A program made the position numbers and the translations under genes. Below are positions 1-20,890 of a stretch of DNA of 64,000 nucleotides, in pieces; position 1 is the stretch's first letter; each line of letters opens with the position of its first letter. This DNA is from Eutreptiella sp. 'Long Island Sound 2002' (lineage: Eukaryota; Protista; Euglenida): NCBI GenBank assembly GCA_964036045.1, contig OZ038378.1:95976001-96040000 (forward strand). The letters are read 5' to 3'. Under the pieces are notes generated by a model, which saw only the letters and a list, made by a program, of their open reading frames with translations, ran no database searches and had not been told where the DNA came from.

Positions 1-134
1 CCCAATTCGAGCTGCATCTCTTTGGGCCCTTTTTCGGTTGGGACCAGTCCCCCCTCACTGCTGGTTGGTTGGGTGGGTTGAGGATGATGGTTGACCAACT
101 GCGGCAAGGAGCATCCCAAGAGTAAGTACAGAGC

Positions 135-1290
135 GTGCGGCTTCCAGAGGTTCTGTACCAACATCCTACCCTTGCCAAACCAGAGGCAGGTGTAATTTAC
201 AAGTTCAAGGGGGGGGGTTTGGGGGTGGTGGGGCAGTGGCTTTGGAAGCCGTGGAAGAAGCATGCAAAAGCCCTCGACCCTTGGGGATTTTTCCCCCTCC
301 AATGTGACCAATTGTTGAACTGGGAGCGAATCATGGCCAACAGGAGGGTTGGGACATTGGAGATGCGGCTGCGCCTCGAAACGGGGGAAGTAGAACCAAT
401 CCACCTCGGGGTGACCCTCCCCGATTTCACAGAGTGCGCATTGCCCTACATCCTCATTAAGCATGAGGACACAAACTGGGTAGGGTGGCATGACATTGAG
501 GGGTTGGAGAGAGTGTGCCACAGAGATGAATTGCCGGACCACGCGAAGACGCCTATACAGTTTCTGATCACCAAACCCCTCCAAAAGGCCCAAACCTATC
601 CCAGCCCCCCCCCGGTCAGCTGCCTACCACACTGTGTCCCTGCCTGTGTGGAAGATGCCCAAAGTCTCTTGGACAAGGTACACTTCTTGGAGGATGACTT
701 CTGCACACCCTTGGGGTTGTATGTGGTATCTTTGCTCCATGGGGTGAGAGAGTGTGGGGGGGGGGGGGGGCGATGAGTGTGCCCCACATGCCGTTCACCA
801 TGGACATATCCTGCACTGTGGTTGGAAGCCATTGCCGCATCGTGTGAAGCGGTATGTACCTTGAATGGTTGCAGCGAAACAGAAGCCTACATCAACTGGC
901 GTTCGATTCGGAGGGGGAAAACCATGACATGACCCTTGTGGTGACGGGCTCTGAGGAACATTGGACAACCTCCATGGATTGCTTAGGCGCACCGTGGAAC
1001 ATTTGGGTGTGTGTGTGTGGAACATTAGAGGTTCCGTATGGATGGTACTGTGTCTGCATGGAACATCATGGGTCGCCGGCCGACATCTGAGGATCTGTAT
1101 TGTATGCTTGCGGTCTTTGTGCAATGTTTGCTTCCACGGACCAATTCAGGGTGTCATGAAACAAATCAGTCCAGCGACAACCCCCCCCCCCCAAAAAAAA
1201 ATCCCACGACGTGTACTCAAGATCCCCCTGAGGTGATCCAAGTTGGTGTGATTTCCTTGCCTTGGCGCAATGAGTTGCACCCCTAGAATG
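135..1290 (+). pseudogene. Degenerate ORF(s) of unknown protein with Cys-rich motifs, probably TE-derived
   Basis: 213-aa ORF breaks at a G-run (~755-771). Downstream frames contain CPTCRSPW and CIVCLRSLCNVC. No family recognised. Confidence 0.25.
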
Positions 1291-1384
1291 TTTGACAAAC
1301 TATGTGGAACATTTTGGCGGTCCAAGGAACGGTTGAGCGTCTCCGTGGAAGAATTTGCACCTCCAAGGAACGTTTGAACCTCCA

Positions 1385-3620
1385 TGAATTATTTCACCCC
1401 CTCTGCGAATCATTTCATACCTCGGTGAATCGTCTGCCCCCCTCCGTGAATCATTTCATACCTCCGTGAATTATGTAACCCCCTCCGCGAATTATTTCAT
1501 ACCTCCGTGAATTGTTTAGCACCCTCTGCCAATCATTTCATATCTTCGTGAATTGTTTACCGGCCTCCGCGAATTATTTTGTACTCTCGTGAATTGTTTA
1601 CCTCCCCTCTGCGAATTTTTTGATATGTCCCTGAATTGTTTACCCCCCTCTGCCAATTATTTCATACCTCCGTGAATTCTTTGACCCCCTCCGTGAATCA
1701 TTTGATACCTCTGTAAATTGTTTACCCCCCTCCGTGAATTATTTCATACCTCCGTGAATTAATTTATACCCTCTGTCAATCATTTGATACCTCCGTGCGT
1801 TATGTAACCCCCTCCGTGAATTATTTGATACCTCCGTGAGTTCTTCAACCCCCTCCGTGAATTTTTTCATACCTCCGTGAATTGTTCACCCCCCTCCGTG
1901 AATCATTTGATAGCTCCATGAATTGTTGAGCCCCCTGCGTGAATTATTGGATACTTCCGTGAATGGTTTACCCCCCTCCGTGAATTATTTCATACCTCCG
2001 TAAATTTTTTAACCCCCTCCGTGAATTATCTGATACCTCCGTGAATGGTTTACCCCCCTCTATGAATCATTTCATACCTCCGTGAATGATTTCATACCCT
2101 CCGCGAATTATTTCATACCTCCGTGAATTGTTTACCTTCCTCCGTGTATTATTTCATACCTCCGTAAATTATTTCATACCCTCCGCGAATTATTTCATAC
2201 CTCTGTGAATTGTTTACCCCCCTCCGTGAATTATTTGATACCTCCGTGAATTGTTTGCCCCCCTCCGTGAATTATTTCATACTTCCGTGAATTGTTTACC
2301 CCCCTCCGCGAATTGTTGGATACCTGCGTGAATTGTTTACCCCCCTCCGTGAATTATTTCATACTTTCGTGAATTATGTGACCCCCTCTGCGAATCATTT
2401 CATGCCTCAATGAATTATTTAACCCCCTCCGCGAAATATTTGATACCTCCGTGAATTGTTTACCCCCCTCTGTGAATTCTTTCATACCTCCGTGACGTGT
2501 TTACCCCCCTCAGTGAATTACTTGATACCTCCGTGGATTGTTTTCCCCCCCTCCATTAGTTATTTCATACCTCCTTGAATTATTTAACCCCCTCCGTGAA
2601 TTGATTGATACCTCCGTGAATTTTTTAACCCCTTAGTGAATCATTTCATACCTCCGTGCATTGTTTAACCCCCTCCGCGAATTATTTGATAACTCCAGGA
2701 ATTGTTTACCCCCCTCCGTGAATTATTTGTTACCTCCGTGAATTATTTACCCCCCTCCGTGAATTATTTCATACATCCGTGAATTATCTAACCCCCTCCG
2801 CGAATTATTTGATACCTCCGTGAATCGTTTAACCCCCTCCCTGAATTGTTTGATACCTCCGTGAATTATTTCATACCTCCGTGAATGCTTTAACCCCCTC
2901 CGCGAATTATTTCATACCTCCGTGAATTATCTAACCCCCTCCGTGAATTATTTTATACCTCCGTGAATTATCTAACCCCCTCCGTGAATTATTTTATACC
3001 TCCGCGAATGGTTTAGCCCCCTCCGTGAATTATTCCATACCTTCGTGAATTATTCAACCCCCTCCTTGAATTATTGGATACCTCCGTGAATTGTTTACCC
3101 CCATCCTTGAATTATTTGATACCTCCGTGAATTGTTTACCCCCCTCCGTGAATTATTTCATACTTTCGTGAATCATTTAACCCCTACGCGAATTATTTGA
3201 TACCTCCGTGAATTATTTAACCCCCTCCGTGAAGTATTTGATACCTCCGTGAATCGTTCCCCCCCCTCCGTGAATTATTTCATACCTCCGTGAATTATTT
3301 AACCCCCTCCGCGAAGTATTTCATACCCCAGTGAATTAGTTAACCCTCTCGGCGAATTATTTGATACCTCTGTGAATCATTTAACCCCCTCCGTGAAGTA
3401 TTTGATACCTACGTGAATTTTTTAACCCCCTCCTCGAATTATTTGATACCTCTGTGGATTGTATACCCCCCTCCGTGAATTATTTCATACCTCTGTCAAT
3501 TATTGAACCCCCCCTGGGAATTATTTCATACCTCCGTGAATTATTTAACCCCATCCGCAAATTTTTTGATACGTCCGTGAATTGTTTACCCCCCTCTGTG
3601 AATTTTTTCATACCCCGGAG
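1385..3620 (+). repeat. 41-42 bp dimeric minisatellite, about 54 units
   Basis: Alternating 20-bp (CCTCCGTGAATTATTTCATA) and 21-22-bp (CCTCCGTGAATTGTTTACCC) subunits share the core CCTCCGTGAATT, e.g. starts at 2221, 2241, 2262. Confidence 0.95.
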
Positions 3621-3715
3621 GGGAATGCCAGACCATTTTCGACATCTGGCCACCCACATTGATGGGAACATTGTGTTGTTGCGTACCAACACATCAAAAA
3701 TAATGGATTCAAGGT

Positions 3716-4511
3716 TTGGCCCCGGACGCTACTGCCACGTCCGCTACAATTTTGAGTCCGGGTATGGCAGAAGCCAAAGTGTACCGTAAAATCGAGGAGA
3801 TGGGCGAAGCCTGCGAACAAGCATGCGTGATCGCCATTGGTGAGGCCGAACGTGATGAGCGCCGGCGGGGAGGACATTACCGAGGCGCCAGCTATGACCG
3901 CTCGTTGCAGGTAGCACCTTTGTGTGTCTTGCATGGCATATTGGGGACACTGGTGTACACAAGAGGAACGTTTGGGCAGTTCTACTTGCGAAGGTTGCAG
4001 TTGGGTGTCGGTGGGAGCAAAGGGCATACAACGAAACGGGATTGTCGCCGGTCACGGCTTGTGTAGGGCACACAAGAGCATGGCCCCCTTCTGCTGATGG
4101 TGAACCACATTGCAAGGGGGTTGGTGCCAGAGTGGTTCACAAGGACTACAATACAGCTGTCATGCAATGAAATGACACCTCCCCATCAACATGGTTTTGA
4201 CTGTACCCCATGTGTTCTCCATGGGGCAGCACGTGGGTGGTGAGAATTGGGTGGAAAAGGGAGGCGTCGGCAGTGGACCGCGTGGCAGACCAGGGAGAAG
4301 GCGTTGCCCAGATGGCATTAAGCGTGCGGGCCATAGGTAGCGTGTCGACAGGCAACCTGTAGTGGTCCGCGCTGGGGCATGGCATGCTACTTGCCCATGG
4401 GAAGGGGACAGGCGATTGGTGGTGCTTTACGGCCGTGGAGAATGGCACAGGTTGCCTCCATCGCACCGCGAGTTCTTGCACCAGCATGCCTTCCGCCTAC
4501 CTGCAGGGTAG
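3716..4511 (+). pseudogene. Decayed TET/JBP-like 2OG-Fe(II) dioxygenase domain
   Basis: The frame of ORF 3716 continues past TAG 4064 as WFTRTTIQLSCNEMTPPHQH (H 4184; the HxD Asp position reads CAT). After a frameshift near 4209 it reads VFSMGQHVGGENWVE...PVVVRAGAWHATCPWEGDRRLVVLY (distal H 4383, Arg 4410), with an in-frame TAG at 4338. Confidence 0.65.
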
Positions 4512-4548
4512 TGGCGGTCCGCAAGGTGGAGCACGGCAACGGCCATGA

Positions 4549-5400
4549 GGCATGGTGAACCCCCCACGTCACAATTGGTGTTGGCTTGGTGCAACATTGC
4601 AATGCCTCCTGCTGGCCTCTGGCGGACAGGAGGCCTTCCATGCTGACTGCCCAGATGATGTGGTGGTGTGGGCTACACTTTGACGCAACATTGTGGCCGG
4701 TACGACAGGTGCTGTGTACCATCCACATGCCATTGCACGTCTCTTGGCGGAGGAGGGGCAGCCAGCTGTTACTGTGTGCCCGTGTAGTGGTCGGTGTCAA
4801 TGTGTTAGGAAGGCTCCCAAGTTTGAGTGGATCCAGCACTCCGAGATGGCGAAGTGCTGGAAGCACATGGTACCAAAACTGGTTGGTGCTGGTGTTCGGT
4901 CTCTGTCTGACTGCTTGTCTCATGATCAATGGTGGCAGCGGTGCCCAGTATGTGACAAGGAAGTCCTCCAAGCTGGAGCTGAGTTGGCAATGGCTGCCCA
5001 AGTGTTGCATGTTACTAACCAGGGCCAAAGTGTGCGGGTGCAAATGAGGGAGGGAATGAAGGGCCGTTCGTTGGGCCGCCCTTCAAACACCCCCCCATGT
5101 GGCTGTGGGGGGGATCTCAAAGAGGCCATTGTACTATCGTCACTGTTGTTCAACAAATGGGCGGCACTCCATGTCCACAATCAACAGCTTCATAGCTTGA
5201 CTGTGAATCATGAGTTTGTGGATGTCAACGGGTACCATTGGTCCCTCCGGGCCATGGTGCTACACATTGGAGCACCTAGGGAGGAAGGGCATTGTGTTGT
5301 TCACATTTTAGTTCGCGATGAGTGGTGGTTGTGTGATGATGTGTCAGTGACCACGGGACTGCCCCCAGCCAATTCGCGAAAGGTGACATTCCTATTGTAG
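4549..5400 (+). pseudogene. Decayed ubiquitin-specific protease (peptidase C19/USP) domain
   Basis: Cys box GMVNPPRHNWCWLGATLQCL (Cys 4579-4581) and His box WSLRAMVLHIGAPREEGHCVVHI...WWLCDD (His 5290, Asp 5335) lie in one frame, with a TGA at 4681. Confidence 0.8.
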
Positions 5401-5989
5401 GAGCGTACTCCCACAGAGATGGTGGGTCTGTCACAAGGCGGTTCACAAAGGGGTGCCTGCAATCGTGGTGCATTTGATGCCCCCTCTCAGTCTGCAGCAA
5501 CAACTGTTGACAGGCATTTCCGCAGCATTCCGAGTAGCACCCCGTTGCCAGCCATGGCGGTGGCAACGGCTGACCCAGAGTCTACCAACCACCTTGGGGA
5601 AGCACAACCCTCCCCTCGCAGCCTGCAGCACCAACTGTCGACAGGCATGCCCCGAGCTTGCCAAGTAACACCTAGTTGGCAGCCATGGCGCTGCCAACGG
5701 GTGACCCCGCATATACCACACATGTGGGGGATGCGCAGCCCTCCACCGAGTTTATAGAAGCTGTGGCAAAGCTTGTACAAAAACAAAGGGTACGATGACA
5801 CAGCATTTGTAGGTCCGTGTGCAAGCCCACCAGGTTCATCTCCGGGCACGTCATGAGAAGGAGTGGGATGAGAGGCATACATGTCAGGGCATGTCACACC
5901 GGTCTGTTACCGAGTCCATAGAACAGGATACAGCCTGATCTGCTGCATTGGCAGCAGCGGGGAGCAATGCTTTTCCTGTGATGATGGGG

Positions 5990-7477
5990 GCAGCTCCCAA
6001 GCAACAAACATCAGGGCGAAAGACACTGCAAGCCTTTGTTGATGGGCAATGGTAGTTGCAGTTCACTATTGAAGGGGGTGTAATGTGCATATGTTGTGCA
6101 TGGGCTGCTCAAACGGATTGTCCTGGGGTGAAGCGCCTACCGGAGGCTGCTACACCCTTGATGAATGGAACGTATGGCATGGGCATGCGTGTGATGATCG
6201 CTCGACCAAAAGGATGGCGTAAAGATGTCCTCGAGGGTCACCTTGGTGTGTCACGTGGCACGACCACCAGCCGCAGGAAAATTGATAATCCTGGCCGCCA
6301 CCACTTGGCCGCCGAGGAGAGTTTCCGGGTGCATCGTGCGGAATGTTTTCGGGCACGGTGCCCTACTGCATCTGCGTGTGTGGTCAATGTGGCAGAGAAG
6401 AGCACTGTGTTCATTAGGGGGGAGGGCATGGAGCTCGGGGTACCTATGACCGACGCGGTGGCAGCCATTTTGTCAAGCTTGGTGGAGGTGTACATTGGCC
6501 TCCACATCCATCCGTGCAATCAGTGAACGGAGTATTCTGCATTGTGCGTTGACCTCCGAACCGGGCCATCATGCCTCTCGACGATGCATAGTTGACAAGG
6601 CCATGGTCGCAATGCATGGTGCCATGCAAGATGGTGTGTCGGAGACCCTCCAAAGGGCATTGTTCATTGCCTTGTTGTTGGATGGATCTGACCGGCAACG
6701 GCATCGCATCAATGAGTATGCCATCCTGCTCTTCTTCCCAGGCACTGGGCCAGGGGGAATGTGTGAGGTGTTCCTTGGTGTGGTGGATGTGGCTTCAGGG
6801 GAGGCACATGAGGTGACGGCACAGGTGGAGGCAGTGCTGCTATCCTTGATGCCTTACCGTGCCTGGTGGGCTCAGAAGGTTGTGGCTCTTGCTGTGGATG
6901 GTGCCTCTAACCTTGGTGTGCGTGGTGCCACTGCACGACAAGCTATTGCTGTGTCAACAATGGAGCACAATGTGTTTGACATGCTTGTGAAGTGGTTGTT
7001 CTTTCTAACCCCCATAGGTGAGCCATGCCATGTGGTCCAGCGCAAGCTAGGTGATGTGGGTCGCCAACGTGCATTGTACAACGGTGCGCGCCAGTGGAAG
7101 GACCTCGAGAGGTGTGTCCAAACGCAAAGCAGACGCGATACACGTAGCGGGTTGCGTTTGATCCCTGCCATTCACCGTATTTGGTGGTCTGAGGCAAATG
7201 CCCGGCGCAACAAGGTGTTCTTGGCCAATGTTCCATGGGTGGTCACGCATTTGGATTTCGAAACGCACCTCACCAGCAAGGAGTGTACCTGCGGCTCCCT
7301 GGTGGGTAAGTGGAAATGTGAAGTTGGGGCTCATTTGGGGCTCAGTTGTGCATTGCGATGTCTTTGTGCTTGTTTGTTGTGCGTTTTGCATGCTAGGTAA
7401 TGTGCATTTAATGTTTTTAGAAGTTTTAGATCCTCACTTGGTCAAGGTTCAAGGGGGGGTTTACTTTTTGGGCGACG
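5990..7477 (+). pseudogene. hAT-family transposase (TTF zinc finger, ZNF862/DUF4371-like), 3'-truncated
   Basis: W*LQFTIEGGVMCICC and LEGHLG (Zn finger); FIALLLDGSD (first Asp); FLGVVDVASGEA; KVVALAVDGASNLG (second Asp); PCHVV; IHRIWWS (RW-like). Frameshift near 6500; cut off at 7477. Confidence 0.85.
7306..7429 (+). other. Probable spliceosomal intron in the hAT transposase
   Basis: GTG G|GTAAGT ... TTTTAG|AT CCT. Splicing gives in-frame SLV-D-PHLVKVQGGVYFLGD. The interval is T-rich. Confidence 0.5.
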
Positions 7478-7513
7478 CTCAGTGAGCGCTCAGTGAGAGC
7501 TAATTGGGGCTCA
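7478..7513. repeat. Fragment of a palindromic MITE-like family (CTCAGTGAGCGCTCA)
   Basis: Its reverse complement matches 9973-10008 at about 32/36. Confidence 0.7.
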
Positions 7514-9460
7514 CTCAGAGGGTCCCCCCCCTGTCCGCCTCTCCTCCGCCCCCCTATCCGCGTACCCATCCATTCCTTCTCGCTCCCATAGGTCCTCTCT
7601 TTCACACCATTTCTAATGTCGTCCCAGGCCTGGAACCAGCGGCTGCAAAGGCTCTCGCGTCTTTCCTTAGTCGCCCCCGGTTACCTACCGCTTTCACAGA
7701 GGCAGCGTACCCGGGGGTGCCTTCGATGGACCTAGAGCCCTTGAAGCTGTGGGCCCAGCAGCTTCCTGCCCCTTCCCAAGAAGTGGTCCACATTACCGTG
7801 TCCAATGTGACCCTTCTTGGAAAGAGCTGGATGCACCGGTGCAAACAAATGTTGCGCCAGGTGCATCCCGCTCTTCGTGCCGTACGCTTCCGCTTTCCTG
7901 TGGCTGCTGTCCAAGATTTGGTGCAGCAGTCCTCAGGAAAGCTAATCGGTACCCCCCACGAGTTCAGGACACGGGTTCATGACACCAAAGATCTCCAACA
8001 CGGTTGGACTGTAGATCTTGGTTTCAGCCACGTTGCACCCAAGAAGGGACTCCTTGAGGCCCTGCCTTTCGGGGTCGGGGTGGTGTCAGGGGAATGGTGG
8101 GAAAGCCTTTCGGCTTGTCCCATCATTCCTGAGTGGTGCCATGTGGTGCCCGACTACACCACCCCAGTCCTGTACAGGACCAAGGAGTCCATGTTCCTCC
8201 GCGGTGCCGCCTCCCCTCCCCCCTACATCTCCCTGGCTGCCCCGGTGTTCTCACATGAACTCCCGGCTCATGACTTTGAGTCGGATGAGTCCTTGTGCGA
8301 CTTGGGGCTCCGGGTGGTTAGGGGGGCGGTAGAGGCCAAGGAGTGCGAGAACTGGTACCGCATTCTCGTCGACTCCTGCGGCACCCAGCCGGATGCAATT
8401 TTGGATCTGCTGTCCAATGCACCCTCTCGCGAGGAGTGCTTGGCTGATCCCAAACTGCCACGGCGCTTGGGTACTCGGCCCGGCAAGCTTATCTCAATGT
8501 TGGGAAGGGACCCCTTGCAACGGGCTAGTCAGCAGTGCAGTGCTGGCTGGCCCGAGATGAGTGATCTCTTCCCAACGTAGTGGTCGGCAATCGCCACCGG
8601 GGAAGATGCTAGGATGCAGACCTGGCATACTGACGTTGATGATAAAGTCAGGTACGCTCCCTAGCATGGGTGAGCTGCCCGGGCATCTCTCAATGATGCT
8701 TGTCCTCTCGGACAAGTATCATTTGGAGGTGCACTTGGGCAGCCGCACCGGTGACCTTGACGCTCTGCGGGTCGCGACCTTCGAGTTTCAGCGTGGGGAC
8801 ATGGTTCTCTTTGCCTCCACGTTGAGACATCGGGGCCTCGACGCGCTGCCGTGGGTGAGCAAGCAGGTTGTTCTCTTCCGCTTCCTGACCCCCGACGAGC
8901 GTCACAAGTGGGTGGACGTGGAACGGTTCATCCCTGACCCTCTGCCAGGGGCCAAGGATGAGCTGGCTTCACGGCCACGGGGAGACGGGCCGCTGCCCGA
9001 CCCTAGGGCTCTCAGCCACTGGGGGCAGTACTTCGCCTTCGGCGAGGGACTGCAGGGCGCGGTTGGTCTGCCGCGGTTTTAGCAGCTGGACGACTGGCTT
9101 GCCCCCCTGGGCCCATGAGGCCCCGGCTGCCCATACCACCCGCTGCTGCTGGCCAGGCCTGCCCTAGACGCCGCCGACCCCATGTGCCACGTGTACGTGG
9201 AGGAAGGCGACGTCTTGTGGACAACCGGGCCATCATGGCTCGACCTGGCTAACAATGGACCCGGGGAGGCCGCCATGCTGCAGCAGTATTGGGCCCCCTC
9301 CTCCTGCCCCATCTCTGCACAGCAGGCTTTGCTGCTCGGCTTCTCCTTGCATCGCGGGCCGGAGAAACGGTGTACAAGGAGCGATGCGGGCGCCGAGGTC
9401 CCGCTTTTGATGCGTTGCATCTGCAGCGGCAAGGTGTTACTCCCTTCTCCCCCTGCATTG
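7504..9460 (+). pseudogene. Decayed ORF containing a PhyH-like 2OG-Fe(II) dioxygenase domain
   Basis: The 358-aa ORF reads through TAG 8578 into MQTWHTD (HxD). After a frameshift it reads HLEVHLGS...FEFQRGDMVLFASTLRHRG...KQVVLF (distal His; CAG possibly from Arg CGG). The frame continues through stops into ORF 9182. Confidence 0.7.
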
Positions 9461-9840
9461 CAGCATTCACACCGGGGTGTTGGGGGGAATATTGGTAGGG
9501 GGCGCGGCTGGGTGGTGGTGGGGTGCACCAGGGTGTTTGGAAAGTTGGGTTGGGGGCTGTGGGCTTGTGGGGCTGTGGGCTGGCAGGGGGTTCTTTGTGT
9601 GTCATGTGTGTAATGCCCCACGAGCGGGCTTAGCATGTGCACAGGCCGCCCCACGAGTGGGCTTAACATGTGCACAAGGTGGCCAGCACGTGGGCCTCCT
9701 GCACTGGCCGTGCGAGTCTGCTGCTGGCCTTTACGGGGCCTGTATGGAGGCCTGTACGGGCCCTTTGTGTGGCCTGCATGGGGCTGTGCTGAGGCAGCTT
9801 CAGCATCCTGCCGCCAGTTGCAGTTGCCAGTCTGGAGGTG

Positions 9841-10018
9841 CAACTGAGAGCTGACTGAGCCGTCTGGCGCGCACAGTGAGCGCTCACTGAGCCATTTGGC
9901 ACGCTCACTGAGCGCTCAGTGCGCCATTTGGCGCGCCCACTAAGCGCGCCAAACGGCTCAGCGAGCGCTCATTGAGCCCAATTAGCTCTCACTGACGGCT
10001 CAGTGAGGTCTCAGTGAG
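9841..10018. mobile_element. Palindromic MITE-like element
   Basis: CAACTGAGAGCT ... AGCTCTCACTGA ends with internal TCACTGAGCGCTCAGT palindromes. Confidence 0.65.
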
Positions 10019-10268
10019 GTGGAACCCGGGACCAGGCCGTTGCAGTGCTTTGCTGCCGTTTGCATCTTTATTGAAACTGGTAGTTTTGGAGTAGCCCCCC
10101 CCCCCCTACATTTGCAGGCTCAATTCCCCCTTGCACGAGGCTTTGGTTGATGCAAACGGCAGCAAAACACAGAGTCAACGTTCGCGCCCGGTAACGTTCG
10201 CGCCCCCCACGGAAGGTGCCAGTAGTTCCTCACGACCACCGCTTTGACGGCAACTGCAACTGGCGTCA

Positions 10269-11745
10269 GTGACGAAGGAGCCGGTGCCGGGGGCATCGGA
10301 AGCGGAGCCCGCAATGCTGACAGCCGCGGGCGAGAGGGCAGCGGCGGTTGACAAGGGTCAGGTGCCGGTGGGCCCATCACTCGCCGACCTGGCCATCGGG
10401 TCCCCGGTCCCTTTCCCCCCGGTACAGGCACCCCGGGCCAGTGATGTACGCGCGGGCTACTTGGGGCTCTACATTGCCCCGGTCAACAAGCAGCCCACAC
10501 CGGCGGACCTCCTCAACAGGACGGTTAACGTGAAGGGGGTATTGCGGCACTCCACCGAGAGGTGGTATTGGATCGTCACCCTCAACGCGGTTACCGCCGC
10601 ACAGGCAACGACGCCCAACCAGATGCACCTGCCGTGCAGGGTGACCGTCTCCGAGGATTGTGGGCTTGTGGCAGGGGAGGGGGGATTTTTTGTAGCCCGC
10701 TTTGCCTACCGGCCGGGGTCCAAACTTTGGTGCTTGGACCGAGCCGTAGGGTTGGAGGAGGGGGGGGTGATGGCCCGCGCTGGCTCAATCGCTTTTAAGC
10801 AGCTGGCGTCATGGGAAGTGTAGGGGGAGGGGTTTTTCTCGGAGGCTTGGCACGCCATGCGTGGCCATGTCGCCACCTTCCGTGCCAGCGCTCTGGGGGA
10901 GGACGTCATCGACCCAGAGGTGGTCAGTGATGGGGAGGTGACGGATGGGGGGAAGAGTGATGGCGCCCGCATTGATCGGAGTACCCGCAGTGGGACCGGG
11001 AAAGGAAAAAGACGGGCAGCCAAGGACAGCAACCCCCCCGCCCCCCCCCAAAAAGTTGGCGGGAAAGGGAAATGCACCCGCACCACAAAAGGCGGCTCTC
11101 AGGAGCCCCCTTCGTGAGCCAGGGTCACCGGGCACCGTGCCATTGACCGTGTACCGGGAGGCATGCCGTGACCGTGACCAGTTCCGCCAGGAGCGGGATG
11201 CTGCCCGCCTGGCAGCGGAAGCAGCCTCCCGTCTCATGGAGGAGCTGGACACGGTCAAGCGGCAGCGGGATGACCTGCAGGCCAAGCTCGTGGACTCTGA
11301 GCGCCAACGGGCTGGCAGTGAGGCACGCCCGGAGGTGCTGCAGCGGTCCAAGGGCTTGAAGCACATTGAATTTGGGCTGGGGGCTGCATCCCCCTCCTAG
11401 TCAAGGGTTCCGGCGGCACCCCCCGCCAACTACAGCGCGCAGTCCATGCAATTCCTGGCATCGGGACTGTTGGAGTACGCCTACTTGGCCACGCGGCTGA
11501 TGGCCGACGCCAAGTCGTCGTGCCAGCAGCTGCAGACCATTGCGGGGCTGGCTCGAAGAACCACGATGCCGGACCTGAGCCCGGACAGCCTGCCGAAGGT
11601 TGAGGCGGAAGTGTCAACCCGCCTGCAGAACGCCGACCGCCGGTATCGGTCGGATGTGGTGGCGGCTGCTCAGCAGCCTGGCTGGAAGCCAAAACCCGTG
11701 GTTGGCAGTCCGGGTTCTCCGCCTGGAACTGCGGCTCTGTGGTAG
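10269..11745 (+). pseudogene. Decayed ~490-aa ORF with a coiled-coil segment, unknown function
   Basis: ORFs 10269 and 10857 share a frame, as do 10945 and 11446, each pair separated by a single TAG. Heptad-like RQERDAARLAAEAASRLMEELDTVKRQRDDLQAKL. Confidence 0.4.
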
Positions 11746-12325
11746 CGACTGGACCCCCACTACGTGGTTCGTAGATGTGTATGGTATATATTGTTCTTGA
11801 GCACTTCATGGTGCTGAAATTTCTTTTGGGGGGCTCGGGCCACAGATTGCAGCGTGCTGTGCACTTCCTGGGCCACCACTTTTTGCCCTGCTGTGTGCCT
11901 TTCTTTCACACGTAAACGTGCCGTGATTCTGGCCGTGTACCAATTGCAGTTGTATGTTACTTTGAAAATATTCACGGAGCTGAATTTTTTCAAGGCGGCC
12001 AGGGGCCACCACTTTCAGCTCTGATGTGCGCCTTTTTTTCACACAAGCCAGGGGCCAGCACTTTCAGCCCTGTTGTGGGCCTGTGTTCAAGACCAGGGCC
12101 AACTCTGGCCCCTGTGGTATGTTGCGCCTTTTTTTTTTCAAGCAGGCCAGAGGCCACCTCTTCCAGCCCTGTTATGGGCCTGTGTCAACAACACGTGGGG
12201 GAGCAGGGCCAGATCTTGCCCCTGCGGTATGTTGAGACTGCAAACAATCTTTTTGAAAAACGTATTGGCCTCTTGTGTGGTGCCTGTGTAGTGCCTGTCT
12301 TTAGGTGTGCAGTGACTGGAAGGTA

Positions 12326-12449
12326 ACGGAGAGCTGACTGAGAGCTTGCTGAGCGCTCACTGAGCGCGCGAAACGGCGCAATGAGCGCTCACCGAGCGCT
12401 CACCGAGCGCTCCGTGAGTGCGCCAAACGGCTCAGAGAGCTCTCAGTTG
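12326..12449. mobile_element. Palindromic MITE-like element, same family as 9841-10018
   Basis: GAGAGCTGACTGAG start; AGCTCTCAGTTG end (12438-12449) is the exact reverse complement of 9841-9852. Confidence 0.65.
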
Positions 12450-12619
12450 GGTGGATGGCCGCCACAAACTGGTGGTTGTGGGCAGGGGGTGCGAGGGGGA
12501 TGTGCCAACTACCACCAGGGACTGAAAACAGGGTGTGTGTGTGCCAGGGCGGTGAGGGGGGGGGGCTGCAGCGCATATTATCGCATCAACCGGGGGGAGG
12601 GGGGCATGAAAGGGGGCAT

Positions 12620-12720
12620 GATGGGACAAACACCCTGGCGGCGTCCCCGGGGGGGGTATGACGGGACAAACACCCCGGCGGCATCCCCGGGGGGGGGGGG
12701 TGATGGGACAAACACCCTGG
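12620..12720 (+). repeat. Three ~40-bp tandem units
   Basis: GATGGGACAAACACCC...GGCGGC-TCCCCGGGGG repeated three times. Confidence 0.8.
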
Positions 12721-12846
12721 TGCAACCCCACTACCCCACCCCGACGAAGAGTGTCAATCCTGCAGGGGCAAGGGGGGGGAAGGCTAGGGACAACAATCAA
12801 GGGGAAACAGGTGGGGGGGATAGCAAAGAGATGTGAACAGAGATAA

Positions 12847-13335
12847 GTGTGCCGCAAGCACGGGGACTGCATGTGGCACTACACCTATGCCACACGTGCT
12901 ACACGCAATTTGGCTGACCGACAAGCCCCGTGTGAGGACACTGTGGTCGAACCAGATGGTAGTCCTGCTCAGCATGGTGGCAACCATGACTTCTTCACTT
13001 TCCGAAGGGGCATGGACTGTGCAGTGTACAGGCAGTCTATGCGCATCTGGTGCAACACATGTATGGTTTGCCACACATGCTTTGTCAAGGATCCAAGACC
13101 GTGTGCTGAAGCAGTGTTGCAGGTTGTGGATGATGCAGCCGAGGTTGCTAAAAATAACAGTGAAGAGGAAGCAGTGGCACCACGGAACTCCGACCCAAAG
13201 TGTGCCTTGGCCCGTGCACAGGCCAAGCTGGTATGTGCCGCAAAGGCAGCCACATTGCGTGACTGGACGTGCGCTCACATCTGTGATTGCTTGGGTGCCA
13301 CGGGTGTGAAGGTGCCATATAACATGAACCGGTGA
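12847..13335 (+). pseudogene. Cys-rich ORF fragment, probably TE-derived
   Basis: CRKHGDC and WCNTCMVCHTC motifs. No family recognised. Confidence 0.25.
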
Positions 13336-14184
13336 CAAAGCGCAGGACATTGCTATGCAACAAGCATTACCTTTGCTAGCCCAAATGGACTGTGATTGGG
13401 TCCCCCCAACGGATCGTGTTACCCGTTCTGCTGCACCACCCAGCAGCTGACAACCATCTTCCTAGGTGCCGGTGGATGACTTGGATGGAGTCATTGATGA
13501 ATGACACAGTTGGGGTTGCAGTGGTATTCTGGTTTTGCATGCTTGCTGTGCCAATCCCCATGGTACCCATGTTCTCCTTCTCTGCAGGTCCATTCATAAA
13601 TTAGCAACCATCAGCATGAATTGTACTTTTTATTTTCTGTCCGATGTTTTGCTCTAACGTTTTCCCATTTCCCTTCGTTTTCCCTTTCCCACATTTTCCC
13701 CAATCCCCCATTTCCCAAGAGGTTTGGGTGTTTTTTTTTGGGGGGGGGTCACTTTTGCCACATTTTCCCCAGAATTGCCTTTCCCACCTTTTCAGGCCCC
13801 TTATTTTCCACAACCCATCATTTTCTTGAACTGAACGGTTGTGTGTTTGGGGGGGGGGGGACCCTTGTATCAGACTTTTCCTAGAGTTCCCTTCTCCACA
13901 TGTTCCATTCCAACCCCCCCTGTTTTCCCCAACCAACACTTTTCCTGAGGCGAAGTCGTTGTGTGTTTTTGGGGGGCGCTGGCACTGCACTTTTATCACC
14001 ATTTCCTTGATGTGGAGTTGCTGTGTCTCGCTTGGGGGGGGGGGTCTGCACTCTTATCACCATTTTGCTGAACTCAATTTCCTGTGTTTCTAGGGGGAGG
14101 GGGGGGGGCTGCACTTTTATCAAACTTTTTCTTGGATGTGCTGTAATATGGGTCTGTGACGCAACATGCCAAATCTGACTTCAC

Positions 14185-17100
14185 ACTTCAGACTTTATAC
14201 CCGTAGCTGTCCCCCCTAGCAGCTTGGTAGTGCGTTGCAGGAGTTGCACTGCCCACTGTCCCAAGGCGGTGTGGGAGTGCGCTGCAGGAGTTGCACTGCC
14301 AGCTGCCCCAAGGTAGTCATGCAGTGCAATGCACGAGTTGCATTGAGCACTGCCCCCGGGCAATGAGGCAGTGCCATGCATGAATTGCGACGCCCACTAC
14401 CCCTAGGCAGTGCGGCGATGAAATTCACGACTTCCACTGCCCACTGCCCCCTGGCAGCTTGGTAGTGCGTTGCAGGAATTGCACTACCCCCCCCCCCCCA
14501 AGGCGGTGTGGCAGTGCGCTGCAGGATTTGCAATGCCCAGTGCCCCAAGGCAGTGGGGGAGTGTGCTGCAGGAGTTGCACTTCCCACTCCCCTGAAGCAG
14601 TGTGGTACTGTGTTGCAGGAGTTGCGCTGCCCATTGCCCCCAGGCAGTGAGGAGTTTGTCGCAGGAGTTGCACTGCCCACAGCCCTAGGGCGGTGTGGCA
14701 GCGCACTGCGGGAGTTGCGTTGCCCGCTACTCCAAGGCACTCATGCAGTGCATGGCGCGAGTTGCATTGACCACTGCCCCCGGGCTGTGAGGGTGTGTCA
14801 TGCATGAATTGCCCTGCCCACTACCCGCAGGCACTGCGGCGGTGAAATGCCGGATTGCCAGTGCCCACTCCCCGCTGGCTGTTTGGTAGTGTGTTGCACG
14901 AGTTGCACTGCCCACTGCTCTGAGGCGGTGTGGCAGTGCGATGCAGGAGTTGCACTGCCCACTGCCCCAAGGCAGTCCTGCAGTGCATTACACGAGTTGC
15001 ATTGAGCTGTGCCCTCGGGCAGTGAGGGAGTGCCATGCATGAATCGCACTGCCCGCGGCCCCCACGCAGTGAGGCAATGTGTTGCACGAGTTGCACTGCC
15101 TACTGCCCTCAGGCGGTGTGGCAGTGCGTTGCAGGATTTGCACTACCCACTGCCCGTAGGCAGTCAGGCGGTGCATTGCAGGAGTTCCGTTGCCCACTGC
15201 CCCCAAGCAATGAGGTAGTGCGATGCGGGAGTTGCACTGCCCACTGCCCCCACACAGTGAGTTAGTGCATTGCAGGAGTTCCACTGCCCACCGGCACCAG
15301 GCAGTGAGGCAGTGCATTGCATGAGTGCAGTGCCCACTGCCCCCAAGCAGTGAGGTAGTGCGTTGCACGACTTGCACTGCCCACTGCCAGGGGTGCAATG
15401 CTGGAGTTGTACTGCCCACTTCCCCAGGCAGCTGCCGCGGTGAAATGCAGGAGTTGCACTGGCCACTGCCCCCATGCAGTGTGGCAGTGTACTGCATGAT
15501 TTCCGCTGCCCACCGCCCCCCGGCAGTGTGGTGGTGTGTTGCGGTGATTGCACTGCCCACGGCCCTAAGGCGGTGTGGCGGTGTATTGCAAGAGTTGCAC
15601 TGCCCGCCGCCCCAGGCAGTCCGGCAATGCATTGCAAGAGTTCCACTGCCCGCTGCCCCCGTGTGGTATCAGTGAGGCATTGCGCTGCGGGAGTTGCACT
15701 GCTCAATGCCCCCAGGCGGTGAGGTATTGTATTGCAGCAGTTGCACAGCCCGCTGCCCCCAGACAGTGAGGTAGTTCGTTGCAGGAGTGGCAATACCCAG
15801 AGGCCCCAGGCAGCGAGGTGGTGAAATGCGGGAGTTGCATTGCCCAATGACCCCGGCTAGTGAGGCATTGTATTGCAGGAGTTGCGCTACCTATTGCCCC
15901 GGGCAGTGAGGCAGTGCACTGCGGGACTTGCACTGCCCACTGCCCCCAGACAATGAGGCAGTGTATTGCATGAGTTTCACTGCCCACTACCCCCAGACGG
16001 TGAGGCAGTGTATTACAGAAGTTCCACCGCCCACTGCCTCCAAGCAGTGAGGCAGTGCACTGCAGGCGTTGCACGGCCCACTGCCCCAGGGGGTGGGTCA
16101 CTATATTATAGCCTTCCACTGCCCACTGCCCCCAGGAAGGGAGGCAGTGTATTGCAGGAGTTGCACTGCCCTTTGCCCCCAGGTAGTGAGGCACTGTATT
16201 GCAGGAGTTCCACTGCCCATTGCCCCTAGGCAGTGAGGCAATGCACTGTAGGACTTGTATTGCCCCTTGCCCTAGCGCTTGAGGCAGTGCATTGCAGGAG
16301 TTCCACTCCCCATGGCCCCCGCGCGGTGAGGTAGTGCATTGCAGGAGTTCCACCGCCCACTGCCCCCGGGCAGTGAGGCAGTTTATTGCAGGAGTTCCAG
16401 TGCTTGCTACACCCAGGCAGTGAGACAGTGCGTTGTAGTAGTTCCACTGCCCATTGCCTCCACGCAATGGGGTAGTGCATGGCACGAGTTGCACTACCCA
16501 CTGCCCCCAGGCAAAGAGGCAGTGTATTGCAGGAGTTGCACTGCCCTTTGCCCCCAGGTAGTGAGGCACTGTATTGCAGCAGTTCCACTGCCCATTGCCC
16601 CCGGGGCAGCGAGGCAGTGCACTGCACGACTTGCACTACCCCTTGCCCTAGGGACCGAGGCCTTGCATTGCAGGAGTTCTACTGCCCATTGCCTCTAGGC
16701 AATGGGGCAGTGCATGGCAGGAGTTGCACTACCCACTGCCCCCAGGCAGTGAGGCAGTGTGTTGCAGGAGTTCCACTGCCCACTGCCCCCAGGCAAAGAA
16801 GTAGTGCATTGCAACAAGAGCGGCAGCTCCATTGCCTAGTGCCCCCAAGCAGCGAGGCAATGTTTAACAAGAGTTTCACTGCCCACTGCCCCCCGGCGAG
16901 GAGGCAGTGTATTGGAGGAATTGCACTGCCCACTGCCCCGAGGCAGCGAGGCAGTGCATTGCAGAAATTCCAATGCACACTGCCCCCATCAGCGAGGCAG
17001 TGCATTGCAAGAGTTGCAATGCCCACTGCCTCCAGGCAGTGAGGCAGTCTATTGCAGGAGTCCCAGTGCTTGCTGCACCTAGGCAGTGAGACAATGCGTT

Positions 17101-18130
17101 GTAGTAGTTCCAATGCCCATTGCCTCCACGCAATGGGGCAGTGCATGGCACGAGTTGCACTACCCACTGCCCCCAGGCAATGAGGCAGTGTATTGCAGGA
17201 GTTGCACTGCCCTTTGCCCCCAGGTAGTGAGGCACTGTATTGCAGGAGTTGCACTGCCCACTGCCCCCAGGCAGTGAGGCAGTGCACTGCACGACTTGCA
17301 CTGCCCCTTGCCCTAGGGACTGAGGCCTTGTATTGCAGGAGTTCCACTGCCCATTGCCTCCAAGCAATGAGGCAGTGCATGGCAGGAGTTGCACTACCCA
17401 CTGCCCCCAGGCAGCGAGGCAGTGTATTGCACGAGTTCCACTGCCCACTGCCCCTAGGCAAAGAAGTAGTGCATTGCAACAAGAGCGGGAGCTCCATTGC
17501 CCAATGCCCCCAAGCAGTGAGGCAGTGTTTAACAAGAGTTCCACTGCCCATAGCCCCCTGGCGATGATACAGTGTATTGGAGGAGTTGCACTGACCATTG
17601 CCCCCAGGCAGTGAAGCAGTGCATTGTAGAAATTCCAATGCACACTGCCCTCATGCAGCAAGGCAGTGCATTGCAGGAGTTGCAATGCCCACTGCCCCCA
17701 CGCATTGAGGCTGTCTATTGCACGAGTTCCACTGCCCACTGCCCGCTGGCAATGAGGAAGTGCATTGCAGGGGTTGCGCTGCTCACTGTTCCCAACCCGA
17801 GAAGCAGTGCATTGCAACAGGAGCGGGAGCTCCACAACCCACTGCCCTCAGGTAGTGAGGCCATTTTTAACAGGAGTTCCGCTACTGTCGCCCCCCGGGC
17901 GGTGAGGCAGTGTATTGCAGGAGTTGCACTACCCACTTTCCTCAGGCAGTGAGGCAGTGGTTGCATGAGTTGCACAACCCACTGCCCCAAGGCAGTGAGG
18001 CAGTGCACTGCAGGAGTTCCACTGCCCACTGCCCCTAGGCAGTGAGGAAGTGCGTAGCAACAGTTCCACTGCCCACAGCCTCCAGGCGGTGTGGCAGTGC
18101 GTTGCAAGAGTTCCACTGCCCACTGCCCTC
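14185..18130 (+). repeat. 47-bp minisatellite array, about 84 degenerate units
   Basis: Unit GCAGGAGTTGCACTGCCCACTGCCCCCAGGCAGTGAGGCAGTGTATT with period 47 (17195 to 17242). It contains an internal CACTGCC/GGCAGTG inverted pair. Confidence 0.95.
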
Positions 18131-20045
18131 TGCCCACAACTATAGTGGAGCAGGGCACACACAGTGCAGTGCAGTGCAGTGCACAACACCAAGCAATGCG
18201 GCACAACACAGAAAGCACTAATGGTGCAGCGCGGCACGCACGGTGTAATGGGCCTATGAGACCCTGTGTCACTGCGCATAGGTGTCCGCAGTGCAACGCC
18301 GGCCAAGTGCGAGTGTGCACTGGTCCAGCTATGCAACACGCACTAGCACACAGCGCGCACTTAGACACACTGCACTCCCGTTTACTTGTACCCGTGGGTA
18401 GACATCCCGGCCGTTGCCTTTTGGTAACAGTGCCTTCGGCACACCACACCACACTCCACTGCACCGGTGAGCCGTCATCGTGGGGATGTTGTCAATGGGG
18501 TGCGCCGTAATGTGGCGCCGCTGGTCACTATCGAACCAGTTGAGGGGGAGGCCGCTACCCAAGGTGTAATTTGCCCGCCATCGGGATTCATAACCGACCC
18601 CCGCCGGTATGTAGGCACAATCTTGCCACCAATCTCTCAGCGCCGTTGGGGAGAGCTGTCACTGGTCCCGGTAGGTCGCCGGGGGAGAAAGGAGAAAGGG
18701 CGTCGGAGGAGCCATGTCAAGTCCGCTTCCGGCAGCTCTTGGGTCGCTGCATCTACGCGGATATTTAGATCCGTTATATGGGTATACGAGTGTATGGGGG
18801 AGGGGACGGGGAGGCTTTGCCGAACCGTCCTCACTAGGCGTCGCTCGCTGTTCCTGAAGCCTGAGCGTCTGGTACTAGGGAGCCGCGGGCTCCCCGGCCG
18901 GTGTTTGGCATTGCGGCGCGCGCATACCCGACACTGTTAGTACCCCACCCATTGGGCGGAGCGCGGGCACTGTCCTTTGGGGCTTCGCACCCCGCACGTG
19001 GCCATTGGGTGGAGATGGGGAGTACTTAGGGTGTGGTGGGGTGCAGTGCAGTGTGGTGTGGTGAGCCGAAGGCACTGTTACCAAAAGGCAACGGCCGGGA
19101 TGTCTACCCACGGGTATAGGTAAAGGGGAGTGCAGTGTGTCTAAGTGCGCGCTGTGTGCTAGTGTGTTGTTGCATAGCCGGACCAGTGCACACTCGCACT
19201 TGGCCGGCGTTGCACTGCGGACACCTATGCGCAGTCACACAGGGTCTCATAGGCCCATTACACCGTGCGTGCCGCGCTGCACCATTAGTGCTTTCTGTGT
19301 TGTGCCGCATTGCTTGGTGTTGTGCACTGCACTGCACTGCACTGTGTGTGCCCTGCTGCATTGTAGTTGTTGGCAGAGGGCAGTGGGCAGTTGAACTCTT
19401 GCAACGCACTGCCACACCGCCTGGAGGCTGTGGGCAGTGCAACTGTTGCTACGCCCTTCCTTACTGCCTAGGGGCAGTGGGCAGTGGAACTCCTGCAGTG
19501 CACTGCCTCACTAGCTTGGGGCAGTGGGTTGTGCAACTCATGCAACCACACCCTCACTGCCTGGGGGAAGTGGGTAGTGCAATTCCTGCAATACACTGCC
19601 TCACCGCCCGGGGGGCGACAGTAGCGGAACTCCTGTTAAAAATGGCCTCGCTCCCTGAGGGCAGTGGGTTGTGGAGCTCCCGCTCCTGTTGCAATGCACT
19701 GCTTCTCGGGTTGGGGGGAGTGAGCAGCGCAACCCCTGCAATGCACTTCCTCATTTCCCGGCGGGCAGTGGGCAGGGGAACTCCTGCAATAGACTGCCTC
19801 ACTGCGTGGGGGCAGTGGGCATTGCAACTCCTGCAATGCACTGCCTTGCTGCATGGGGGCAGTGTGCGTTGGAATTTCTGCAATGCACTGCCTCATTGCC
19901 TGGGGGCAGTGGTCAGTGCAATTCCTCCAATACACTGCCTCATCGCCAGGCAGTGGGAAGTGGAACTCATGTTAAACACTGCCTCACTGCTTGGGGGCAC
20001 TGGGCAATGGAGCTCCCGCTCCTGTTGCAATGCACTACTTCTTTG
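17470..20045. repeat. Long inverted repeat (arms ~1 kb, 17470-18465 and 19030-20045) with ~570-bp spacer
   Basis: The minus-strand ORF 17715-18464 and plus-strand ORF 19135-20064 translate to nearly identical text, including the unique 330-bp non-satellite part. Confidence 0.9.
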
Positions 20046-20890
20046 CCACTGCCCCTTGCCCTAGGGACTGAGGCCTTGCATTGCAAAGATTCTACTGCCC
20101 ATTGCCTCCAGGCAATGGGGCAGTGCATGGCAGGAGTTGCACTACCCACTGACCCCAGGCAGTGAGGCAGCGTATTGCAGGAGTTCCATTGCCCACTGCC
20201 CCTAGGCAAGTGGTGCATTGCACTGCCTCACTGCCTGGGGGCAGGGGCAGTGCAACTCCTGCAATACAGTGCCTCACTACCAGGGGACAAACGGTAGTGC
20301 AACTCCTGCAATACACTGCCTCAATGCCTGGGGGCAGTGGGTAGTGCAACTCGTGCCATGCACTGCCCCATTGCGTGGAGGCAATGGGCAGTGGAACTAC
20401 TACAACGCACTGTCTCGCTGCCTGGGTGCACCAAGCACTGGAACTTCTGCAATAAACTGCCTGACTGCCTGGGGGCAGTGGGCGATGGAACTCCTGCAAT
20501 GCACTACCTCACCGCGCGGGGGCCATGGGGACTGGAACTCCTGCAATGCACTGCCTCAAGCCCTAGGGCAAGGGGCAGTGCAAGTATTGCAGTGCACTGC
20601 CTCACTGCCTGGGGGCAAGGGGCAGTGGAACTCCTGCAATACACTGCCACACCGCCTGGAGGCTGTGGGCAGTGCAACTGTTGCTACGCACTTCCTCACT
20701 GCCTAGGGGTAGTGGGCAGTGGAACTTTTGCAGTGCACTGCCTCACTGCCTTGGGGCAGTGGGTTGTGCAACTCATGCAACCACTGCCCCACTGCCTGGG
20801 GGAAGTGGGTAGTGCAACTCTTGCAATACACTGCCTCACCGCTCGGGGTGCGTGGGTAGCGGAACTCCTGTTGAAAATGGCCTCACTGCC
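19370..20890 (-). repeat. 47-bp minisatellite array in inverted orientation
   Basis: Reverse complement of the 14185-18130 unit. Confidence 0.9.

Follow-up and report, generated by a model that had tools for sequence, protein, structure and literature searches.

DNA transposons of the hAT superfamily (Ac, hobo, Hermes and Tol2, and the TTF-finger/DUF4371 'ZMYM1/FAM200' branch) are 3–5 kb in size, create an 8-bp target site duplication (TSD), and carry short terminal inverted repeats (TIRs) beginning with CAG as well as subterminal short repeats. Their transposase has an N-terminal TTF-like finger and the motifs D, D, CxxH, RW and E-R-x-(F/I)-S in this order, with spacings of 68 (D-D) and 324 (D-E) residues in Hermes, and internal-deletion derivatives of the elements occur. 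Here, we analyzed a 64,000-nucleotide stretch of genomic DNA (contig OZ038378.1, positions 95,976,001 to 96,040,000; hereafter the window), which very probably contains a dead, internally damaged copy of a hAT-superfamily transposon family of about 20 kb, made up of window positions 1–3612, 3613–7283 and 12862–14209. The element shares the above features with known hAT transposons, its D-D and D-E spacings being 72 and 375. It differs from them in its size, in a transposase that is fused to a ubiquitin-specific protease (USP) domain and ends in a Cys/His-rich tail, and in carrying an extra open reading frame (ORF1), a helicase gene and a kilobase-scale satellite. Moreover, the Pfam hAT, DUF4371 and Dimer_Tnp_hAT models fail to recognize the transposase because of its divergence.

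Cysteine proteases specific for ubiquitin-like proteins are found on other transposon proteins, namely Ulp1 (C48) domains in plant MULE and CACTA elements and OTU-like proteases in some Helitrons. The element in the window has the same kind of partnership, but its USP (C19) and OTU-like domains represent a protease clan other than that of Ulp1 in another transposon superfamily, and the two protease-like domains flank a third, dioxygenase-like domain, which we refer to as X. A 2-oxoglutarate (2OG)-Fe(II) oxygenase next to an OTU-like protease is likewise present in a selfish-element polyprotein of the Betaflexiviridae, whose replicases contain AlkB-OTU-protease modules. These, however, are RNA viruses with a recognizable AlkB, whereas a profile of X gave no match to E. 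coli AlkB (hhalign probability 0.1). For DNA transposons, TET/JBP genes have been described in eleven fungal lineages, including hAT7 of the rust Puccinia, in which it precedes a co-oriented transposase (Kojima, 2025; PMC12730594). That a hAT can come with a dioxygenase was therefore already known. An initial annotation, made from the DNA alone, had placed a TET/JBP-like dioxygenase, a USP and a hAT transposase at 3716–7477 and described a hAT with such cargo as not known; on a combination of USP and OTU, we found no paper. The fungal elements (hAT7; Kyakuja/Dileera/Zisupton, Plavaka) and the one studied here share a dioxygenase-like gene upstream of a co-oriented hAT-type transposase, but hAT7 has a recognizable TET/JBP and a 7-bp TSD, as opposed to the 2OG-dioxygenase-like X and the 8-bp TSD of the present family. 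Ubiquitin, OTU and Ulp1 are nowhere mentioned in the hAT7 paper (PMC12730594; helicase was not among the terms searched). Literature searches combining hAT or transposase with deubiquitinase, USP or OTU, and Euglena with hAT, returned nothing relevant. To our knowledge and in the searchable papers, there is no description of a transposase fused to a deubiquitinase, nor of a hAT as long as about 20 kb in which selection maintains a helicase, an OTU-like domain, a dioxygenase-like domain and a satellite of its own.

Ends, copies and gene order of the element

Comparison loci (L001, L003, L004, L005 and others) came from one long-read assembly, ENA ERZ25074135, which also holds the window itself; L001 and L003–L005 were reached through look-ups of proteins found with the USP piece of the window. 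An exhaustive HMMER search with this piece returned 54 proteins, nearly all of them fragments of the same repeat, and ordinary USPs appeared only at E ~5e-4. The family is present in hundreds of copies in the genome. In all five DNA copies examined (window, L001, L003, L004 and L005), which are 60–82% identical at the nucleotide level, the domain order is conserved. Window 3620–7283 matches L003 8957–12521 at 82%, L005 at 81% with an inversion, and L004 9152–12885 at 62%; in these three loci the transposase adjoins the dioxygenase-like and USP domains, as the initial annotation would lead one to expect. L001 (60%) keeps the X domain, the USP and the 3' end, lacks the transposase and is an internal-deletion derivative. 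The annotated interval overlaps the element, but its boundaries need revision: the homologous unit is 3613–7283, and bases 7284–7477 are the start of a different repeat, after which the element resumes at 12862 (12862–14209 matching L003 13518–14689) and ends at 14209. We also used four public runs, which represent two organisms and an estuary metagenome, and aligned their contigs to window 4060–10059, on which 131 to 3274 contigs per run fell with a likeness of 85–99%. Overlapping contigs bridge the junctions of dioxygenase and USP (4131–4678), of USP and linker (5207–5726), and of linker and transposase (5489–5895, 5709–5983 and 5949–6474), and many break at 7283/7284. Given the recurring order and the contig numbers, the array is far beyond chance. 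A dinoflagellate origin, with relics of the spliced leader, was also considered; a DinoSL match was not found.

The right ends of the five copies, preceded by TCAGAC-type heptamers, align to ...TATACCC(R)(K)(W)GCTG and then diverge. Even between subfamilies with an overall identity of only 60%, this terminus is conserved. In the window, the 3' subterminal region and right TIR (13619–14209) comprise ~120-bp tandem repeats and TCAGAC-type heptamers, ending in ...TATACCCGTAGCTG at 14209. No partner of this end and no inverted repeats around 3600–7500 were found inside the window, because the left end lies 6.1 kb before it, at window coordinate -6146 (position 3720 of L008, the window's own contig). 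The complete copy thus measures 20,356 bp; its TIRs, CAGCTATGGGTATAA and CAGCTACGGGTATAA, agree at 14 of 15 positions, and its 8-bp flanks, CCCCCCCT and TCCCCCCT, at 7 of 8. A second copy, of 19,711 bp, extends from L007 4724 to L004 15195, with TIRs CAGCTCTGTGTATA and CAGCACTGGGTATA (12/14) and 8-bp flanks CTCACTGC and CTCACTAC (7/8). For the L007 end, we estimate ~0.07 fuzzy 14-mer matches in 20 kb by chance, to be multiplied by ~4e-4 for a 7/8 flank. An 8-bp target site duplication and short TIRs (14–15 bp) beginning with CAG, the marks of hAT elements, are hence both found. Since a single TIR/8-bp-TSD pair encloses everything in two copies, all three domains of the initial annotation lie inside one hAT element, as it had proposed. 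In its intact form, this element most likely reads, from left to right, left TIR, superfamily 1 (SF1) helicase gene, kilobase-scale internal satellite, ORF1, ORF2, subterminal repeats and right TIR; the parts present in the window are all on the plus strand.

The USP-transposase protein of ORF2

ORF2 in all likelihood encodes a single protein composed of a USP deubiquitinase, a linker, a TTF zinc finger, a DDE hAT transposase and a Cys/His-rich tail. Its start and the USP domain occupy 4486–5400 and match residues 1–374 of the relative P0245 at 79%; the ATG at 4486 is 26 nt upstream of the ORF1 stop and in the +1 frame relative to ORF1. The USP Cys box, NWCWLGATLQCL, lies at 4573–4608 and the His box, GHCVVHILVRDEWWLCDD, which includes GHCVVH...WWLCDD, at 5287–5340, both in frame 1, with zinc-ribbon Cys pairs at 4777–4803 and 4942–4959 between them. 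Three stops interrupt the region in the window (4546–4548, 4681–4683 and 5398–5400), the last of which is gone in other copies, where position 5400 is T. Pfam UCH (PF00443) was detected in P0245 with 27.3 bits against a cut-off of 23.9, while the window piece itself gave only a sub-threshold UCH_1 match (E 0.09, 12.8 bits). When protein-language-model features were compared in the Atlas, the USP piece scored 0.93, with UCH in 10 of the 10 best family-bearing hits. On the strength of the Cys box, the His box and the UCH match, the domain is assigned to the USP family (peptidase C19).

P0245 (697 aa, 13 members) is stop-free through the USP, the linker and the TTF finger into the transposase, and in P0009 the USP His box and the TTF finger are likewise connected in one frame. 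USP and transposase therefore belong to one protein, in contrast to the initial annotation, which had described the USP as cargo. The linker (5401–6022), a single open frame in both relatives, contains a 131-bp tandem duplication at 5481–5744, detected with TRF. This duplication encodes a repeated Pro/Ser/Thr-rich peptide, of which P0003, P0009 and P0245 have two to three units, the number varying between copies.

The TTF-like zinc finger (6023–6103) opens a segment, 6023–7283, that corresponds to the N-terminal 455 residues of the transposase (P0177 residues 1–455, 79–81%). P0177 (1036 aa, 231 member sequences) represents the intact TTF-transposase with its Cys/His-rich tail and displays D240, D312, C355xxH, R422-W423 and E687 (in VERAIS) in order. 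Of these motifs, the window retains LLLDGSD (D1, 6672–6692), AVDGASN (D2, 6891–6911) and CHVVQRK (CxxH, 7026–7046), whereas the RW motif is mutated to HRIWWSE (7173–7193). An 8-nt deletion at 6502 shifts the transposase frame; other copies have 8 additional nucleotides at this position, which restores the frame, and 48 additional nucleotides at 7051. In the Atlas, the transposase piece reached 0.89 to DUF4371/FAM200-ZBED5 RNase-like clusters. Beyond the interrupting repeat, at 12862–13618, the transposase ORF continues with a C-terminal extension that matches P0177 residues 797–1036 at 73–78% and L003 from 13518 onward at 79%. Within this extension, a Cys/His-rich motif at 12979–13083 (GNHDFFTFRRGM.C..C...C.TC.VCH.CF) is conserved; it resembles a zinc finger and is kept even in the transposase-less L001.

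ORF1 and the nature of its X domain

ORF1 very likely combines an OTU-like protease domain with the 2OG-Fe(II)-dioxygenase-like domain X. P0089 (400 aa, 21 members) and P0083–P0086 encode this protein, with the OTU-like domain at the N-terminus and X behind it, and it ends at a conserved stop after ...RL(P/H)AG(A), located at 4509–4511 in the window. Relatives carry the OTU-like motifs AGACFFYA, WGGRPDHF...VVLLR and GGHYRG. The window retains the C-terminal two thirds of the domain (3613–3898; tblastn match to P0089 residues 100–195 at 70–81%, changing from frame 1 to 2 at ~3722), including DHFRHLATHIDGNIVLLRT at 3631–3687 and GGHYRGASYD at 3869–3898. In an AlphaFold2 model of ORF1, the OTU-like core (residues 105–177) is predicted with a per-residue confidence (pLDDT) of 70–95, and OTU deubiquitinase structures recur, weakly, in fold searches. 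Together, the motifs, the modeled core and the weak structure matches make OTU a lead for this domain rather than a demonstrated membership.

The X domain spans 3899–4511 (P0089 residues 196–399), running in frame 2 and then frame 0 with three stops. Its motifs TTIQLSCN (4145–4168) and PPHQHGFD (4178–4201) are in frame 2, GQHVGGENW (4224–4250) and AWHATCPWEGDRRLVVLY (4377–4430) in frame 0; the motif strings quoted in the initial annotation are all found in the window, on the plus strand, co-oriented and decayed. Frame 1 upstream of the Cys box was considered as the true frame of the X end and rejected: codon-position analysis favors frame 0 to 4511, and frame 1 at this position is the start of ORF2. 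Across the family, the pattern is P-H-Q-H-x-x-D, G-Q-H, W-H-(A/G)-T and R-R-L-V-V-L-Y, with W-H 67 residues after the proximal motif and R-R-L-V-V-L-Y 9–10 residues after the His of W-H. A distal His followed 9–10 residues on by R-x5-aromatic is as in 2OG oxygenases. We collected more than 150 family proteins with X, and none of them is a relative from outside the transposon family. AlphaFold2 modeled X with a mean pLDDT of 34 when predicted alone (26 sequences) and ORF1 with 48 (93 sequences), X remaining below 50 both times.

Selection on the coding parts was assessed by comparing the window copy with that of L004, to which it is 62% identical. Nei-Gojobori counts were made on tblastx alignments, which carry some bias toward amino-acid similarity. 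The proportions of nonsynonymous (pN) and synonymous (pS) differences were 0.30 and 0.69 for the N-terminal half of X, 0.30 and 0.71 for its C-terminal half, 0.25 and 0.90 for the USP, 0.20 and 0.62 for the transposase, and 0.38 and 0.65 for the linker. Differences at third codon positions were about twice those at first and second positions. This excess identifies the frames of the initial annotation as the coding frames and indicates that the cargo was kept by selection as the family diversified. Between subfamilies, X, USP, transposase and linker, for which pN/pS was computed, are under purifying selection.

What kind of enzyme X represents is less clear-cut. The initial annotation had taken it for a TET/JBP-family DNA-base dioxygenase, which would oxidize thymine or 5-methylcytosine in the element's DNA and so evade or reset silencing, with the deubiquitinases helping. 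The C-terminal motifs of X do fit the general 2OG pattern of H-x-small and R-x5-aromatic (WH(A/G)T ... RRLVVLY), and with Atlas features X scored 0.96 (215/256 features shared) against a cluster that bears the name Fe2OG dioxygenase domain, and 0.88 against one with Tet_JBP in 27% of its members. Also in favor of this reading, TET/JBP genes are carried by many fungal DNA transposon lineages including hAT (PMC12730594), and base J, which is made via a JBP-type thymidine hydroxylase, is present in Euglena DNA (PMC1874636). In dinoflagellates, TET/JBP homologues produce 5-hydroxymethyluracil (5hmU), a mark of silenced transposons there (PMC11572971). However, Pfam Tet_JBP (PF12851) gave no hit with E up to 10 in P0055, P0065, P0068, P0089, P0086 or any of the 93 aligned members. 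Compared to the HxD...H...R ligands of TET/JBP, X has the distal His and R-x5-aromatic, but its metal motif is H-x-H-x2-D and not HxD, and its His-Arg spacing is 9–10 as against 16 in JBP1 (H189, D191, H239 and R255; PMC1874643). In addition, a prolyl-4-hydroxylase-like cluster (2OG-FeII_Oxy_3; 0.90, 173 shared features), the nearest Pfam-labeled one, ranks ahead of the Tet_JBP-bearing cluster, and the fold of X is not predicted confidently. We consider the TET/JBP identity unlikely. The proximity of the prolyl-4-hydroxylase-like cluster instead speaks for a protein that does not target DNA, either a 2OG oxygenase of prolyl/lysyl-hydroxylase type or a metalloprotein of cupin type, which would act on a protein substrate along with the deubiquitinase-like domains. 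The two ubiquitin-protease-like domains flanking X, a His-Arg spacing that matches PHD2-type enzymes (H374 and R383 in PHD2), and the resemblance of H-x-H with a following acidic residue to cupin motif 1 point in the same direction. This proposal, too, can be entertained only tentatively, as X yielded neither a Pfam hit to the 2OG-FeII_Oxy families nor a usable structure model, and, by the standard that the tool itself sets, the Atlas evidence is weak: the recognition value of the X query, 2168, is below the level for strong evidence and counts against the TET/JBP reading as well. Because of this low value, we call X 2OG-dioxygenase-like and leave its subfamily unassigned.

A more radical alternative is that the whole array is a nest, or a chance juxtaposition of a hAT with captured or neighboring fragments of host genes, which would serve no purpose in the transposon. 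Nesting is common, unrelated repeat DNA sits inside the window copy at 7284–12861, and the L004 copy lies within the terminal array of another repeat. Nevertheless, this explanation is already contradicted by the shared order of all five copies, subfamilies of 60% identity included, by the one TIR/TSD pair enclosing everything in two copies, by the single ORF of USP and transposase, and by the third-position excess with pN well below pS in X and USP; we regard it as highly improbable. The explanation that we favor, a hAT element of about 20 kb in which ORF1 and the USP-transposase are integral parts, has several observations weighing against it. X has no match in Pfam, PHROGs, NCBIfam or a PDB profile search, the OTU-like domain none in Pfam, NCBIfam or PHROGs (PHROGs being searched with ORF1 only), and the transposase none in Pfam, NCBIfam or a PDB profile search. 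PDB sequence and profile searches with the USP likewise gave no meaningful match. Across Pfam, run on every window piece and on intact relatives, PHROGs and NCBIfam, UCH and the helicase domains were the sole ones to appear. Of the profile matches that the initial annotation implied, UCH was thus recovered in P0245, but Tet_JBP, 2OG-FeII_Oxy and DUF4371/hAT were not. Membership of the transposase in the hAT superfamily, like the calls of the OTU-like and X domains, is predicted from motifs, language-model features and TIR/TSD. Each TSD has one mismatch, and that of the window copy is a low-complexity C-run. The position of the first ATG of ORF2 is not conserved between subfamilies, and translation of this frame might depend on frameshifting, reinitiation or splicing instead of on its own start. 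Finally, no RNA evidence was obtained for the element, and the roles that we propose below for the USP and for ORF1 are conjectural.

Remaining parts of the window copy and possible roles of the enzymes

Upstream of ORF1, window 1–900 contains the tail of the region of the putative SF1 (Upf1-like) helicase gene, with 221–848 matching L004 1858–2475 at 60%. The matching L007 ORFs are fragmented; they hit AAA_30 with 23.5, AAA_11 with 21.1 and AAA_12 with 26.4 bits, just under the 27-bit cut-offs, at E-values of 5e-5 to 3e-4 for AAA_30 and AAA_11 and of 6e-6 for AAA_12. Helicase and satellite both lie between the left TIR and ORF1. The satellite begins with degenerate units at 946 and forms a regular 41-bp array at 1378–3614 (39–40 copies with 80% match by TRF). 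Its unit differs by subfamily, while the position is the same: 41 bp in the window (946–3614) and L003 (13–4231), 52 bp in L004 (2880–6609) and 88/24 bp in L005 (4896–5661). A core resembling TCCGT(G/C)AA..ATTT is common to the 41- and 52-bp units. Such arrays may be transposase-binding sites that have expanded, or may give rise to satellites elsewhere in the genome. The initial annotation had overlooked the satellite along with the helicase, the OTU-like domain and the total length of about 20 kb.

Compared to intact relatives, the window copy is interrupted by at least 10 in-frame stops and changes frame at least 4 times. It is missing ORF1 residues 1–99, that is, the front of the OTU-like domain including the Cys motif, and 341 residues of the transposase (P0177 456–796), including the catalytic Glu and the hAT C-terminal motif. 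Judged from these lesions, the copy is dead and would be capable of none of the activities proposed here.

About 1 kb of the element is replaced by the unrelated repeat DNA at 7284–12861. Most of this DNA is a second high-copy repeat (7284–12455), of which 84–91% copies are found at L004 15216–17961 and L005 1–4459, both on the minus strand. The repeat contains a separate PhyH-like 2OG dioxygenase frame at 7504–9082, with WHTDVDD near 8640 and LRHRG near 8850; it is frameshifted in the window, and other copies lack one base at 8641/8646. Arrays of an 11-bp repeat of the GCTCAGTGAGCG type occur at 7478–7513, 9843–10018 and 12316–12455, and an array of this type is also where the giant hAT copy of L004/L007 has inserted. 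An inverted repeat at 7478/10007 was considered as the pair of insertion ends and rejected, as other copies show the repeat from 7284 to beyond 11606. In three runs, the summed contig depth over window 7260–7459 was ~10 times that of neighboring bins. The first ~200 bp of the second repeat (7284–7483) thus seem far more abundant than its remainder, perhaps as a short non-autonomous derivative. On the other side, the right end of the element at 14209 adjoins a satellite-bearing foldback (14185–20890), the two overlapping by the last 25 bp of the element.

An intact element would be cut and pasted by its transposase like other hAT transposons. The fused USP could act in cis at the transposition complex, where it might spare the transposase from ubiquitin-dependent removal or strip ubiquitin off nearby chromatin proteins, and ORF1 might add a second deubiquitinase-like activity together with an activity that oxidizes a DNA base or a protein. 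Carried further, the element could be thought to possess its own epigenetic toolkit, in which the dioxygenase of ORF1 would hydroxylate DNA bases (turning thymine into 5hmU, for instance, as happens at the start of base J synthesis in Euglenozoa) and the OTU-like and USP domains would remove ubiquitin marks, so that marks would be set or erased on the element itself or at target sites. We consider this scenario rather improbable; were it true, the toolkit would constitute a counter-silencing module of a kind new to transposons, from which base-modifying enzymes of the host might have come.

Being dead, the window copy adds only another example of the family, and the wider interest lies in the family as a whole. 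The differing internal satellites at the same place suggest a route by which transposons could seed satellite DNA. If the enzymes are active, the family would allow a direct study of how ubiquitin signaling of the host, and perhaps DNA-base modification, is manipulated by a DNA transposon, and, if the genome is that of a euglenid, such a study would concern a lineage with unusual DNA bases.

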